Shown here: one piece after another, positions 55,754 through 63,151 of the stretch
Layout of the letters: every line of letters begins with the position of its first letter
Position numbering within the stretch: the stretch's first letter is position 1
Source of the DNA: Neoconidiobolus thromboides FSU 785
Lineage: Eukaryota > Fungi > Entomophthoromycota
Assembly (NCBI GenBank): GCA_025603075.1
Contig: MU626278.1
Coordinates: 1 to 64,000, forward strand
DNA: 64,000 bases
Direction of reading: 5' to 3'
Notes under the pieces: generated by a model
What the model was told of the DNA's origin: nothing
What the model saw: only the letters and a program-made list of their open reading frames with translations
Databases searched by the model: none
Translations under genes and position numbers: made by a program

Positions 55754-58911
<3,158 letters not shown>

Positions 58912-59055
58912 TGTAAGAATTTTATTTTTAAAAAACAAAGGTTTTTAAATCAAACTAATCAGCTTTTGAGTGATTTGAGGAATTTAAAATTACTGCACAT
59001 TCTTAAAATTATTTTAAACGCATCTAGTAGAATTTTCTTTAACTAATTTAATATA

Positions 59056-59318: not shown

Positions 59319-62300
59319 TTACGCCGAATGTTTATTACATAGCCAGGCATGCCATATGGGCTGAATACCACGCGGTGTCTCGCTTTTATGATTAAAAGCC
59401 GTACACTTACGGTAACTTACTCCCAAGACTAAATTTTCATTCATACCCATATTGTCCTGTATAAACATTCTGGTTTCTTTTAGAGCAAGGTGTCGAATAC
59501 TAAGAAGTGCCTCTTGTGCTTTATTGATCCAGAATGAAATCCAGTTTGGATTTTCTCCATCTTCGTTGATTCCTCGAGAATTGAACATTTCTAGTGCTGC
59601 TGCTGTAATAGAGGAATCTACTGACTTATGAGAAGAACAGAACGATTCAATAACACAACTGAGTTTCTCAAAGTAAGTTACAAGATCCTTCTCATTAGAC
59701 GATACAATTGTATTAATGACGTCTGAATGAGCATTTCCTAGTATCTTTGAATCCGAATAAAAGGAGCATAGTTGAGAAACTATTGATAGAAGTGGCCCAG
59801 CACTACCAATAAAATCATGGGGTCTATTAAGTGGAATACCTGGGTGATTTGTAAAGTGAATGCTTAAAGAATCTTCACATAAGAAGTGGATCCTGAAAGT
59901 TTCGTGATTCCATTTATTTGGGTCTATCCAGGCATTCCCACAGTTCATTGTTGGTAAGACGACAACAAGACGTGGTGCTTGTATTTCGCTTGTAGCAACT
60001 ACTTGCTTACGAAGGGATGCAGCAAGCGAAAAAAGTTCTGGTGATAAGGGCTCTCTGTAAACTATAAATTTATCAGTTGATATATTGGGGGAGAAGCTGG
60101 GCAATGACTTGCATTGTAAAAGAAAATCTGAATCTAGGATATCAGAAGTGGTACTTCGTTTTAAGGGATTTTGATTTAAAAGTGATCTTATCACATCCGA
60201 AGCTTCAATCGGAAGTTGATTTACTTCTGGAAGGGTTAATATACCTTCTGAATCCCAATAAATTCCCTTTGAGATAAGATTTTTAGCATTATCAGAATTT
60301 AATAGTTTCAATATCTCTATTTCTGGAGTTCCAACACCCATATATGGCTTACGAACATATAGCTCCTAATACATATTAATAAAATATCAAACTAAATATT
60401 GAATAAACTTACATAGATAAAACAACCAAGTGCCCATACATCCATAGCAGGAGTTGCCGAAATTAGATTAGTTGAACTTTTTAAGAAAAGTGAAGCAAGT
60501 TCAGGAGGGCAATAGCGTGGGGGTTTGGATCCTTTAACTATATCGCCTTCAATTAAACAACGATCAATACGAGTAAGCATAATCCTGTTTGAAATAGAAT
60601 CTCCGGAAAAACATAAATCAATGGGTTGAAGATCTGAAATAACAACTCCCCTTGCATGACAGAAACTTAATAACTGTGCTACTTGTTTAACAATCATTCG
60701 AAGGTCATCATCAGATAATGGATATTTTTGTTTACGCAACAAATCAGTAAGTCCCATTCCACATGCTGAGTGTGTAATTACATAGCAAGACTTGCTCGAT
60801 GTATCAGATAAAGTATAGGTTTCTTTGATATGAGGTACATAAGGACCTTCTAAAATTTGAAGCATTTCAATCTCTTTTTCCCAAAGGGCCTTATTTAAAT
60901 AAATGAGTATTGTTACTGAGTTAGAAGAGGACACTTCTAGTGCAGTAGTGGCAAACACATCTTCTCTAGCGAATACTATAGGAGAAGTCATTTGATAAAA
61001 GTTACCTAATTTTTTAGCCAAAAGTGGTTCTAAGCCTAAATTTAAAGTATTAGGTAAGGAACGCTGTGAGAAACCTGAATTAGAAATTGGATTTGATTGA
61101 ATATTTGACATGCTTTGGAACAATTGAGCAGATTCTTGCCCTTCCCTAAGATTCGAATGTGTTCTTGAAATTACTATATCTTCTCTATATGGCCAATTTT
61201 GTATTGAACTAGTCGGTGTAGATAATTCATCTGGCGATCTGGAAAAAAGATTGACATTATCGATAGTACGCCCTAAGTGGGATATTCTTTCAAGTGGGCT
61301 CATCCTCTCATCATTTTGTCTGATTGACGTTGTACGAAACAAATTTGTATCAATTGAAAGTTGGGATGTAGCGTTGTGAGCAAGGGTCTTTGAAGGAAAG
61401 TAATCTATAGTCGGCGAAGCGGGCTCAGCCAAGGAGGGTTCTTTAAGTTCCTGTGATATACTTCTAGTATGATTTATTGTACTAGCAATATTTTCGCTTC
61501 TTTTTGAATCTAATGGGGAAAGAGGCCTCATGAATTTGATTGGAACTGGTGCAACAGAACTAGTAGCATCATCTTTACCTGAAAACATGCTATAAGATGT
61601 ACCATCAATCATGTCCCATTTATCGCTATTATCATTGTCGTCTTCACTTCTACTAACAGGGCGAGAAATCACCCGTGGTGTAGAAAGTAGCTTTGACTCA
61701 GAGGATGATTTTATTGGACTCAAATATTGGCCATTTATACTTGGAGTATTTGAATCATGAGCTGAGTATTGCGAATAACGTCCAGGTGTACCTATATTAG
61801 AATCTGGGAAAGTAGGTTGCATTAAATTACTATGATTCGCATTACTTTTATCGCTTATTGATTTATCTCCTTCTTTTTGATGCTTTTTGTTTTTTCTACG
61901 CCAGTGCCTTAAGCCTACTCCAATTATAGCCCCCATCATAAGAACTCCAAATAAAGCACTTACAATAGCTATTATAATAATATTATTAGATGAAGTTCCA
62001 GAGCTATTAGTGGTTCCACTATCATCACCGTCGTTAGGATCGTTTACGGATGTAGTACTAGGAGTTAATGCAGACCAGCTCCAATTAGTCGTATCAAGTT
62101 TATAAACAGCTGTACTAGAGGTTCCAACACCACCATAAATATATATATTCTTACCATCATCAGCTGCTGTATGTCCCATTAAATTTGAGGGTCCAGATTC
62201 AGAGTTGGAAGTTGACTGTTTTTTCCACTCTAACTGGAAAGTTTGAGTGTTCCAATTACTCATATCGAGAGTGTAAACCGACAATAAGTTAGGCTTCCAA

Positions 62301-63151
62301 TCAAGACCTCCTCCTCCAATTAGAATAGCCTTGCTACCTACGCATGATAAAGTTGCTCCTATTCTAGAACCTGGATTGTTTGCTAAGGCAGGATAATCAA
62401 ATTTAGTTTGAGCATTAAAAACTATTTCCTCTGTTATTGAAAATGTTTGAATTCTTTCCTCGAATTTCGTGCCATCATACCCTCCATAAACTATAACAAC
62501 CGATTTATCTTTCATATAACATGATGAATGAAAAGCAACAGGTTGACTATTCATAGAACGCAACCATTCAACTCTATCTATTTGATAGGATGAGAGCATT
62601 TCAATTGCTTTGTTACCAGGCTTTCCACTTGAATCCGGGACAATGCCTCCATATAACAACAATCGTTCTTTTATTGCCATTAATGTTGCGCCTATACGTA
62701 CTGGATCATCTAATGGGAAAGTAGGTGAATTACTAGAATTAGTCCACGTCCATTTGTCAGTGTTTAATGACAGTATTGGAATGTTTTGTTTTGATAAATC
62801 TGAAGCTGCTGTAAAAGTATGTACATAGTTTGAGCTTGTTACTGAAGAGTGGAATTTCATTGGGTATGTCGTTTTTTCCGTTTTCAATTTATACCATATG
62901 TTTTGATTTAGATCGAAAACCATTGTATCTGCATAAGGCTTTGCTGAATAAACATCAGCTGTCGGTTGTATACCGCCATGTATTATTAATTGGTTATTGA
63001 CTATTGCTGAAGAGTGAAGAGCTAAAGGCTTTGGATCAGCCTTTACAAGATTTGAAGACCCTAGAGAAAGTATTGGAGTTATTGATAAAAAAAATGAACA
63101 AATTAAAATGGGAAAGTCATTTATCTTTGATTTTATTAGAACTGAAAACAT
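59319..63151 (-). CDS. Single-pass receptor-like protein: signal peptide, six-bladed kelch ectodomain, TM, S/P-rich linker, pseudokinase, C-terminal domain (~1261 aa, 2 exons)
   Basis: Exons 63151-60413 and 60365-59319, joined by a 47-nt GT-AG intron (FIY|ELYVRKPY). Kelch GG motifs LIIHGG, LLLYGG, VIVYGG, ILIGGG, IYIYGG. TM IIIIAIVSALFGVLMMGAIIGVGL followed by RHWRRKNKK. Kinase C-lobe CHARGVVISDLQP...RYCPPE...DVWALG. Confidence 0.85.

Follow-up and report, generated by a model that had tools for sequence, protein, structure and literature searches.

What would a fungus do with a receptor-like protein whose kinase fold has lost key catalytic residues, and where would such a protein have come from? 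The question is raised by a gene of Neoconidiobolus thromboides FSU 785, an insect-associated member of the Entomophthorales, on the minus strand at 63151..59319 of contig MU626278.1 (assembly GCA_025603075.1); the 64,000 nucleotides from position 1 of this contig are referred to here as the window. Its predicted product joins a kelch beta-propeller, a single transmembrane (TM) helix, a kinase fold and a conserved C-terminal domain (CTD). Receptor kinases with a single membrane pass are regarded as typical of animals and plants and as absent from fungi. Surface sensing in fungi is usually explained by G-protein-coupled receptors, histidine kinases and sensors of the Wsc/Mid2 type, and the textbook statement that fungi have no receptor kinases rests on Dikarya. 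The reading favored here, to which we assign a probability of about 0.6, is that the gene encodes a type I receptor with non-catalytic signaling, by way of a pseudokinase scaffold and the CTD, and that it represents, in the Entomophthorales, a receptor-kinase family of long standing in early-diverging fungi.

The locus is a single gene of two exons with a product of 1261 amino acids (aa). Two minus-strand open reading frames (ORFs) cover the interval, at 63151..60392 (919 aa) and 60341..59319 (340 aa), and are connected by a 47-nucleotide GT..AG intron (60412..60366) that keeps the frame and leads from the end of the DVWALG motif into the rest of the kinase C-lobe. The product is identical to K502DRAFT_363189, a 1261-aa "hypothetical protein" of the same strain in GenBank, and the exon translations (913 and 348 aa) correspond exactly to its two halves. 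The exons were searched singly, and this GenBank record served as the full-length protein. In the Massospora orthologue, an ORF break falls at the position that matches the intron. A single unbroken ORF of 913 codons contains the kelch propeller, the TM helix, the linker and the greater part of the kinase, so the locus does not consist of separate kelch and kinase genes; this alternative is ruled out, as the frame runs through DVWALG and the remainder follows a clean 47-nucleotide intron. A paralogue expansion in the N. thromboides genome is likewise ruled out, since the assembly holds one copy of exon 2 and one copy of the CTD.

The predicted ectodomain is a six-bladed kelch propeller. Two Pfam propeller models match residues 43-366 (PF24681 with 98.8 bits and PF24981 with 82.8 bits, both against a cut-off of 50), and inspection of K502DRAFT_363189 by eye yields six blade units. 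Hydropathy picks out only two segments of the protein, one near the N-terminus (residues 13-31) and the strongly hydrophobic TM helix itself (residues 391-413, Kyte-Doolittle 2.8). Lys and Arg are absent from the 15 residues that precede the helix and number seven in the 15 that follow it, a distribution that predicts a type I orientation. The helix contains tandem small-xxx-small motifs (A-x3-A, S-x3-G and G-x3-G), and this pattern suggests helix-helix pairing. The TM region also gives weak Pfam matches to TM_ErbB1, a model of the ErbB1 TM-juxtamembrane segment, and Neoconidiobolus and Massospora share 79% identity over the helix with its flank (residues 391-424). The cytoplasmic linker that follows carries the motif SPL[DE]xIARL in all five members of the window protein's clade.

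The kinase fold is supported by its profile score, and residues needed for phosphotransfer are missing from it. Pfam Pkinase (PF00069) matches residues 758-995, spanning both lobes, with 67.4 bits against a cut-off of 31.7 (44.7 and 12.9 bits when the exon pieces are searched separately), and PF07714 barely passes its threshold (23.6 bits, cut-off 23.1). The nearest solved kinases are Snf1/AMPK, BRSK, SIK and CK2, whereas an intact family member lies nearest to CDK4/6, TTK and Rad53. Motif positions were anchored on the alignment with Snf1, on CDK4 by way of an intact family member, and on the family alignment. At the beta3 VAIK site, which reads VTIL, Lys is replaced by Leu; Massospora also has Leu, and a metagenomic homologue has Trp. 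The catalytic loop HRDLKPxN reads ISDLQPID, with the Asp kept, Lys changed to Gln and Asn to Asp; the loop of Massospora is LVNFQPAD, in which the catalytic Asp has become Asn as well. The DFG-aligned position reads RID (LTR in the Snf1 alignment), so that Arg stands in place of Asp and the first position holds no Asp, and no GxGxxG Gly-rich loop was found in the alignments of the window kinase fold. Residues that stabilize the fold persist: Glu in alphaC, Glu at the APE site (PPE) and Asp in DxWxxG (DVWALG). Loss of catalytic residues with retention of fold residues is the usual mark of a pseudokinase whose shape is preserved, and the domain is best classed as such from its alignment.

Much of this agrees with an earlier note on the same DNA, composed from the letters and their translations. 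That note had proposed a kelch propeller, a single TM helix and a kinase fold, which Pfam and hydropathy place where it had put them; the altered motifs VTIL, ISDLQPID, TRID and PPE, the missing GxGxxG and the retained alphaC Glu and DVWALG, which reappear in the alignments anchored on Snf1 and CDK4; and one gene rather than two, as the uninterrupted ORF confirms. Its coordinates, 59319-63151, prove to be the exact gene span, given that the exon translations equal both halves of K502DRAFT_363189, and the type I topology holds as a prediction. The linker of about 320 aa that it described as S/P-rich exists, but "Ser-rich" is the better term, with 18% Ser and 7% Pro over residues 425-744. The note had left out the intron in the kinase C-lobe and the conserved domain of about 235 aa that follows the kinase.

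That additional domain, the CTD, is predicted to be a folded unit, and neither Pfam nor the PDB offers a match to it. An AlphaFold2 model computed from 42 aligned homologues reaches a predicted local distance difference test (pLDDT) of 79.5 and a predicted template modeling score (pTM) of 0.81, with a beta-sheet packed against a helical bundle; a model of exon 2 from three sequences (pLDDT 36) was not used. Pfam gives no match at residues 997-1261, even at E 10, and none for ten fragments that consist of the CTD only. Foldseek finds nothing in the PDB at E 0.001 or better for the CTD model, an exhaustive structural scan returns generic helical-bundle matches only (best Z 5.5), and a CTD profile run against PDB sequences yields nothing credible (the top match is a de novo designed helical protein, E 0.006). 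The ESM Atlas provides no usable match. The near-invariant residues in a tally of homologues are PRL..LP, a Trp, F.LH.LCE, a His six residues further on, GY, a Pro, a Phe and a C-terminal W.C..H. Every conserved CTD residue is present in K502DRAFT_363189, including H1073, C1076, E1077, H1083, C1256 and H1259. The conserved H-x2-C and C-x2-H pairs suggest a zinc site that would pin the tail onto the sheet.

The CTD also occurs outside this architecture. It ends the nemertean Lineus longissimus protein XP_064621640.1 (Ank-LRR-Roc-COR-A/COR-B) at residues 1524-1720, directly after COR-B, and it is found in LRR proteins of Adineta vaga and Mortierellaceae, in a Rhodelphis Ank-PDZ-IQ protein and in Cyanophora, sometimes twice per protein. 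By analogy, its place in these ROCO, LRR, Ank and PDZ proteins would be the slot of an output domain. Identification of the CTD as a COR or KEN domain is ruled out: neither Pfam, PDB sequences nor fold comparison lends it support, and the link to ROCO proteins consists of the end of the nemertean protein alone.

How far the architecture extends among fungi depends on the method of search. Word-index protein searches returned only orthologues from Entomophthorales, a collinear protein of 1154 aa in Massospora cicadina and one in Entomophthora muscae, and therefore say little about distribution. In E. muscae, the region QTSX02005843.1 6001-9370 carries two annotated genes (741 and 352 aa) with about 50 uncalled bases between them. 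The first of these models stops in the kinase C-lobe, and the pair is evidently one kelch-TM-pseudokinase-CTD protein split by gene calling. A hidden Markov model (HMM) search of the whole library, with an alignment of exon-2 equivalents as query, gave 44 matches to the CTD. The same collinear kelch-TM-kinase-CTD order is present in Ambispora gerdemannii, Chytridiales sp. JEL0842, Irineochytrium annulatum, Actinomortierella ambigua and Entomortierella beljakovae, and the family is represented by incomplete models in Paraglomus occultum, Quaeritorhiza haematococci and Zopfochytrium polystomum. Between the Chytridiales protein and the window protein, the kinase and CTD align at E 7e-27, and the propeller and TM helix match weakly but in collinear order. 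An invention specific to the Entomophthorales lineage is ruled out by this HMM search, which found members in chytrids, Glomeromycotina and Mortierellomycotina. Among the 30 matches looked up, 15 of them with an organism name, none belongs to Dikarya or Mucoromycotina, and absence from these groups is judged from those matches alone. A search with the ectodomain returned, besides the E. muscae orthologue, one weak match, to a KLHDC1-like protein of a frog; it brought up no kelch-TM relatives lacking a kinase from Dikarya. Database names of family members are "hypothetical" or mislabels throughout. GenBank lists the A. ambigua protein KAF9977088.1, with kelch, TM, kinase and CTD, as "Cyclin-dependent kinase 12", apparently a mislabel derived from a generic kinase match.

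In contrast to the window protein, nearly all other family kinases keep VA[IV]K, the alphaC Glu, HxD[LI]KPxN and D[F/L/M]E, with the exception of Paraglomus, in which the catalytic-loop Lys is Gln. The chytrid, glomeromycotan and Mortierella kinases are therefore likely to be active, to judge by these motifs. They are of the non-RD type (HGD, HLD, HAD, YCD or HTD), have D-[F/L/M]-E in place of DFG and are devoid of a canonical Gly-rich loop. Non-RD kinases are over-represented among the innate-immune receptors of plants and animals. The window protein has all four family modules (kelch, TM, kinase fold and CTD), with the kinase signature VA[IV]K...HxD[LI]KPxN...D[FLM]E degenerate, and its orthologues in Massospora and in the metagenomic relative are collinear and of full length. 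In a maximum-likelihood tree built on kinase and CTD, Neoconidiobolus, Massospora and the metagenomic homologue, which share the same catalytic losses, form one clade (support 100/99), so that the degenerate kinase appears restricted to a single well-supported group within the Entomophthorales. The tree otherwise tracks fungal taxonomy, as expected under vertical descent, and a single loss of catalysis inside a vertically inherited family would fit these data. Since the collinear architecture occurs with intact kinases in other fungi, the window gene is read as belonging to an old fungal receptor-kinase family and as having lost its catalytic residues secondarily.

A homologue in Basidiobolus meristosporus (MCFE01000454.1 4241-6142) takes the series one step further. 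The kelch propeller, a TM helix that is nearly identical, the linker motif SPLDRIARL and the CTD are all present, and the kinase is missing: from kelch blade 6, one ORF continues via the TM helix and linker directly into the start of the CTD. Identity between Neoconidiobolus and Massospora is 44% in the pseudokinase, 42% in the CTD and 35% in the ectodomain, and the pseudokinase and CTD are under purifying selection. Conservation that is highest in the TM helix, pseudokinase and CTD, together with the kinase-less Basidiobolus form, points to an output that does not depend on phosphotransfer. Because Basidiobolus retains the CTD in a homologue that has no kinase, the CTD is at least as likely as the pseudokinase to be the output module. 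The earlier note had envisaged signaling through a pseudokinase scaffold; the degenerate kinase stands, but the pseudokinase as sole output does not. Its suggestion of an independently assembled fungal receptor is not borne out as an assembly peculiar to this lineage, given the collinear architecture in Chytridiomycota, Glomeromycotina and Mortierellomycotina. The ligands that it had named as possibilities (host, carbohydrate or non-self) are guesses. It had also called the gene the best candidate for an undescribed system in the window, and full-text literature searches and Pfam indeed turned up no paper or curated family for it, although coverage of the literature is incomplete and undescribed status is thus not proven.

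These features can be combined into a working scheme. The secreted propeller would lie outside, anchored by the single TM helix, with the disordered Ser-rich juxtamembrane linker, the pseudokinase and the Cys/His-bearing CTD inside. Binding of a ligand to the propeller would alter the pairing or orientation of receptors across the membrane, the pseudokinase would act as a conformational scaffold, switch or dimerization module, and the CTD, probably with linker motifs phosphorylated by other kinases, would relay the signal by binding partners rather than by catalysis. Location at the plasma membrane, dimerization, zinc binding by the CTD, its output role and any ligand are each elements that we infer. 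A broader proposal, more tentative and with chances a little short of even, is that fungi ancestrally possessed a true receptor Ser/Thr kinase family composed of kelch propeller, TM helix, non-RD D-x-E kinase and a zinc-binding output CTD shared with animal ROCO GTPases. This family would survive in chytrids, Glomeromycotina, Mortierellomycotina and Zoopagomycota and would have been lost from Dikarya, while Entomophthoromycotina would have lost catalysis stepwise, from the pseudokinase of Entomophthorales to the kinase deletion of Basidiobolus. If so, the CTD, and not phosphotransfer, would carry the core signal.

Several points weigh against the receptor reading. The signal peptide and topology are predicted from hydropathy and charge, and the membrane could be that of the endoplasmic reticulum (ER) or another compartment instead of the cell surface. 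The retained Asp of ISD and the alphaC Glu may be compatible with an unusual residual activity. The family kinases counted as active are so classed from motifs, in proteins that have no canonical Gly-rich loop and in which D-x-E replaces DFG. Finally, Basidiobolus may possess other copies that do bear a kinase.

The residual-activity point leads to a distinct explanation, in which the fold is still an unusual enzyme working with substitute residues and the protein is a true receptor kinase. WNK, CASK and Haspin are atypical kinases that turned out to be enzymes, and the N. thromboides domain keeps the catalytic-loop Asp, the alphaC Glu, the Glu of APE and an intact C-lobe, is under purifying selection and belongs to a family whose remaining members look catalytically competent. 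Nevertheless, the beta3 Lys, the catalytic-loop Asn and the DFG Asp have been lost together, their replacements vary among orthologues (L/L/W, D/D/R and R/R/S), Massospora has Asn for the catalytic Asp, the family alignment reveals no conserved substitute Lys in the N-lobe, and the Basidiobolus homologue dispenses with the kinase domain entirely, all of which makes an enzyme very unlikely. The same catalytic losses might instead reflect a decaying gene or an annotation artefact without function, an idea that the bare "hypothetical" annotation and the two gene models of the E. muscae orthologue could be taken to favor. It is essentially excluded by the intact 1261-codon frame with its clean intron, by the full-length collinear orthologues in Massospora and the metagenomic relative, and by identity that peaks in the pseudokinase, CTD and TM helix; the two E. 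muscae models result from an error of gene calling over the short uncalled stretch between them.

Two further alternatives accept a functional sensor and differ in its place or its task. A sensor that resides in the ER or some other internal membrane and is organized like Ire1/PERK, with lumenal sensor, TM helix, cytosolic kinase fold and C-terminal effector, would share the type I layout with a kinase fold and a further C-terminal domain, and no sequence feature fixes the compartment. However, the protein lacks a KEN/RNase domain, Pfam does not match it to the Ire1 or PERK families, its kinase is nearest to Snf1/AMPK, CDK and TTK rather than to Ire1 or PERK, no ER-retention motif is seen at the C-terminus, and the Ser/Thr/Asn-rich stalk and the ErbB-like TM and juxtamembrane features (the weak TM_ErbB1 matches) are commoner in surface proteins; an internal sensor is accordingly judged unlikely. 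A cell-wall or adhesion sensor, with a propeller that binds wall glycans of the fungus itself, or a surface, and a cytoplasmic part that is a mere anchoring scaffold as in Wsc/Mid2, would suit the sugar binding of galactose-oxidase-type kelch propellers, the short Ser/Thr-rich stalk ahead of the TM helix and the known form of fungal surface sensing, in which single-pass sensors have disordered tails. Yet Wsc and Mid2 tails are short and have neither a kinase fold nor a folded C-terminal domain, Pfam detects no WSC or Mid2 domain in the window protein, and the ancestral form of the family, with its apparently competent kinase, speaks for signaling rather than anchoring, so that this function is distinctly unlikely. 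The preferred reading remains a receptor that signals without catalysis through pseudokinase and CTD.

Known systems resemble this receptor in part. The closest functional likeness is to the pseudokinase receptors of animals (ErbB3/HER3, RYK, ROR and PTK7) and plants (BIR2 and STRUBBELIG-type receptor-like kinases, RLKs), which are single-pass type I proteins with an extracellular binding domain and a catalytically degenerate kinase fold that is regarded as a scaffold or allosteric partner. In contrast to these, the window kinase is a Snf1/AMPK-, CDK- and TTK-like Ser/Thr type with no clear tyrosine-kinase or RLK/Pelle signal, and the protein has a kelch ectodomain and an additional conserved CTD and comes from a fungus. 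Attractin and MEGF8 also present an extracellular kelch propeller on one TM helix, and it is the Attractin/LZTR1 propeller model of Pfam that scores 82.8 bits, but Attractin has CUB, EGF, plexin and laminin modules, a short tail and neither kinase fold nor CTD, which limits the likeness to the class of propeller. Ire1, PERK and RNase L share the succession of sensor, TM helix, kinase fold as switch and C-terminal output domain; the window protein differs in having no KEN/RNase domain, a CTD with no match in sequence or fold, and a kinase of another subfamily. With ROCO proteins (LRRK2, DAPK1 and MFHAS1) the connection is the CTD, homologous to the last ~200 residues of the nemertean ROCO protein in the output-domain slot, whereas Roc and COR are absent from the window protein and its CTD matches neither Pfam COR-A/COR-B nor the Roco fold. 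The nearest relatives are the kelch-TM-kinase-CTD proteins of chytrids, Glomeromycotina and Mortierellomycotina, with collinear order, homologous kinase and CTD and the same CTD Cys/His signature. The beta3 Lys, alphaC Glu, HxDxKPxN and D[F/L/M]E are intact in their kinases; of these, the Lys, the Asn and the Asp of DFG are gone from the window protein and its relatives in the Entomophthorales.

Table 1. Features of the kelch-pseudokinase gene, in window coordinates.
Feature	Residues	Position	Strand	Basis or remark
Whole gene, start to stop codon		59319..63151	-	ORFs, intron, match to K502DRAFT_363189
Exon 1	1-913	60413..63151	-	
Signal-like hydrophobic N-terminus	1-31	63059..63151	-	Hydropathy; orthologues likewise hydrophobic at N-terminus
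Six-bladed kelch beta-propeller, predicted ectodomain	43-366	62054..63025	-	Pfam; blades by eye
Ser/Thr/Asn-rich stalk, propeller to membrane	367-390	61982..62053	-	
TM helix	391-413	61913..61981	-	Hydropathy
Positive-inside stop-transfer flank	414-424	61880..61912	-	
Ser-rich cytoplasmic linker, ~290 aa	425-712	61016..61879	-	
Linker motif SPLERISHL	618-626	61274-61300	-	
Linker motif SIQNWPY	649-655	61187-61207	-	
Pseudokinase, split by intron	about 713-996	60117..61015	-	
VTIL		60905-60916	-	beta3 VAIK site
ISDLQPID		60617-60640	-	Catalytic loop
LTRIDR		60560-60577	-	DFG region
CPPEL		60497-60511	-	APE site
DVWALG		60425-60442	-	
Intron, 47 nucleotides, GT..AG		60366..60412	-	In kinase C-lobe, right after DVWALG
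Exon 2 and stop codon	914-1261	59319..60365	-	
CTD, ~235 aa, small beta-sheet and helical bundle (predicted)	about 1028-1261	59322..60023	-	
CTD site PRL..LP		59952-59975	-	
CTD site F.IHFLCE		59874-59897	-	
CTD site W.C..H		59328-59354	-	

Adjacent minus-strand ORFs at 56834-58938 encode an alanyl-tRNA synthetase, interrupted by at least one intron. The G+C content of the window is about 35%, and its introns are short; together with the interrupted synthetase gene, these features identify it as eukaryotic DNA, from Entomophthoromycotina.

What is new in this locus is the combination of a kelch ectodomain with a kinase, and a CTD that appears undescribed, in a kingdom thought to have no receptor-like kinases or pseudokinases. 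The CTD is a candidate for a new signaling output domain, predicted to be folded, bearing conserved Cys and His residues and having no Pfam entry or solved relative, which follows kinases in fungi and Roc-COR in an animal. The family would also provide a natural series in which to ask what a receptor pseudokinase is for, from an apparently active kinase through a pseudokinase to no kinase at all. In the insect-pathogenic Entomophthorales, such as Massospora and Entomophthora, a single-copy putative surface receptor would be a candidate sensor of the host or the environment. More broadly, a conserved, vertically inherited family of kelch receptor kinases in early-diverging fungi would alter the picture of how fungi sense their surroundings at the cell surface.

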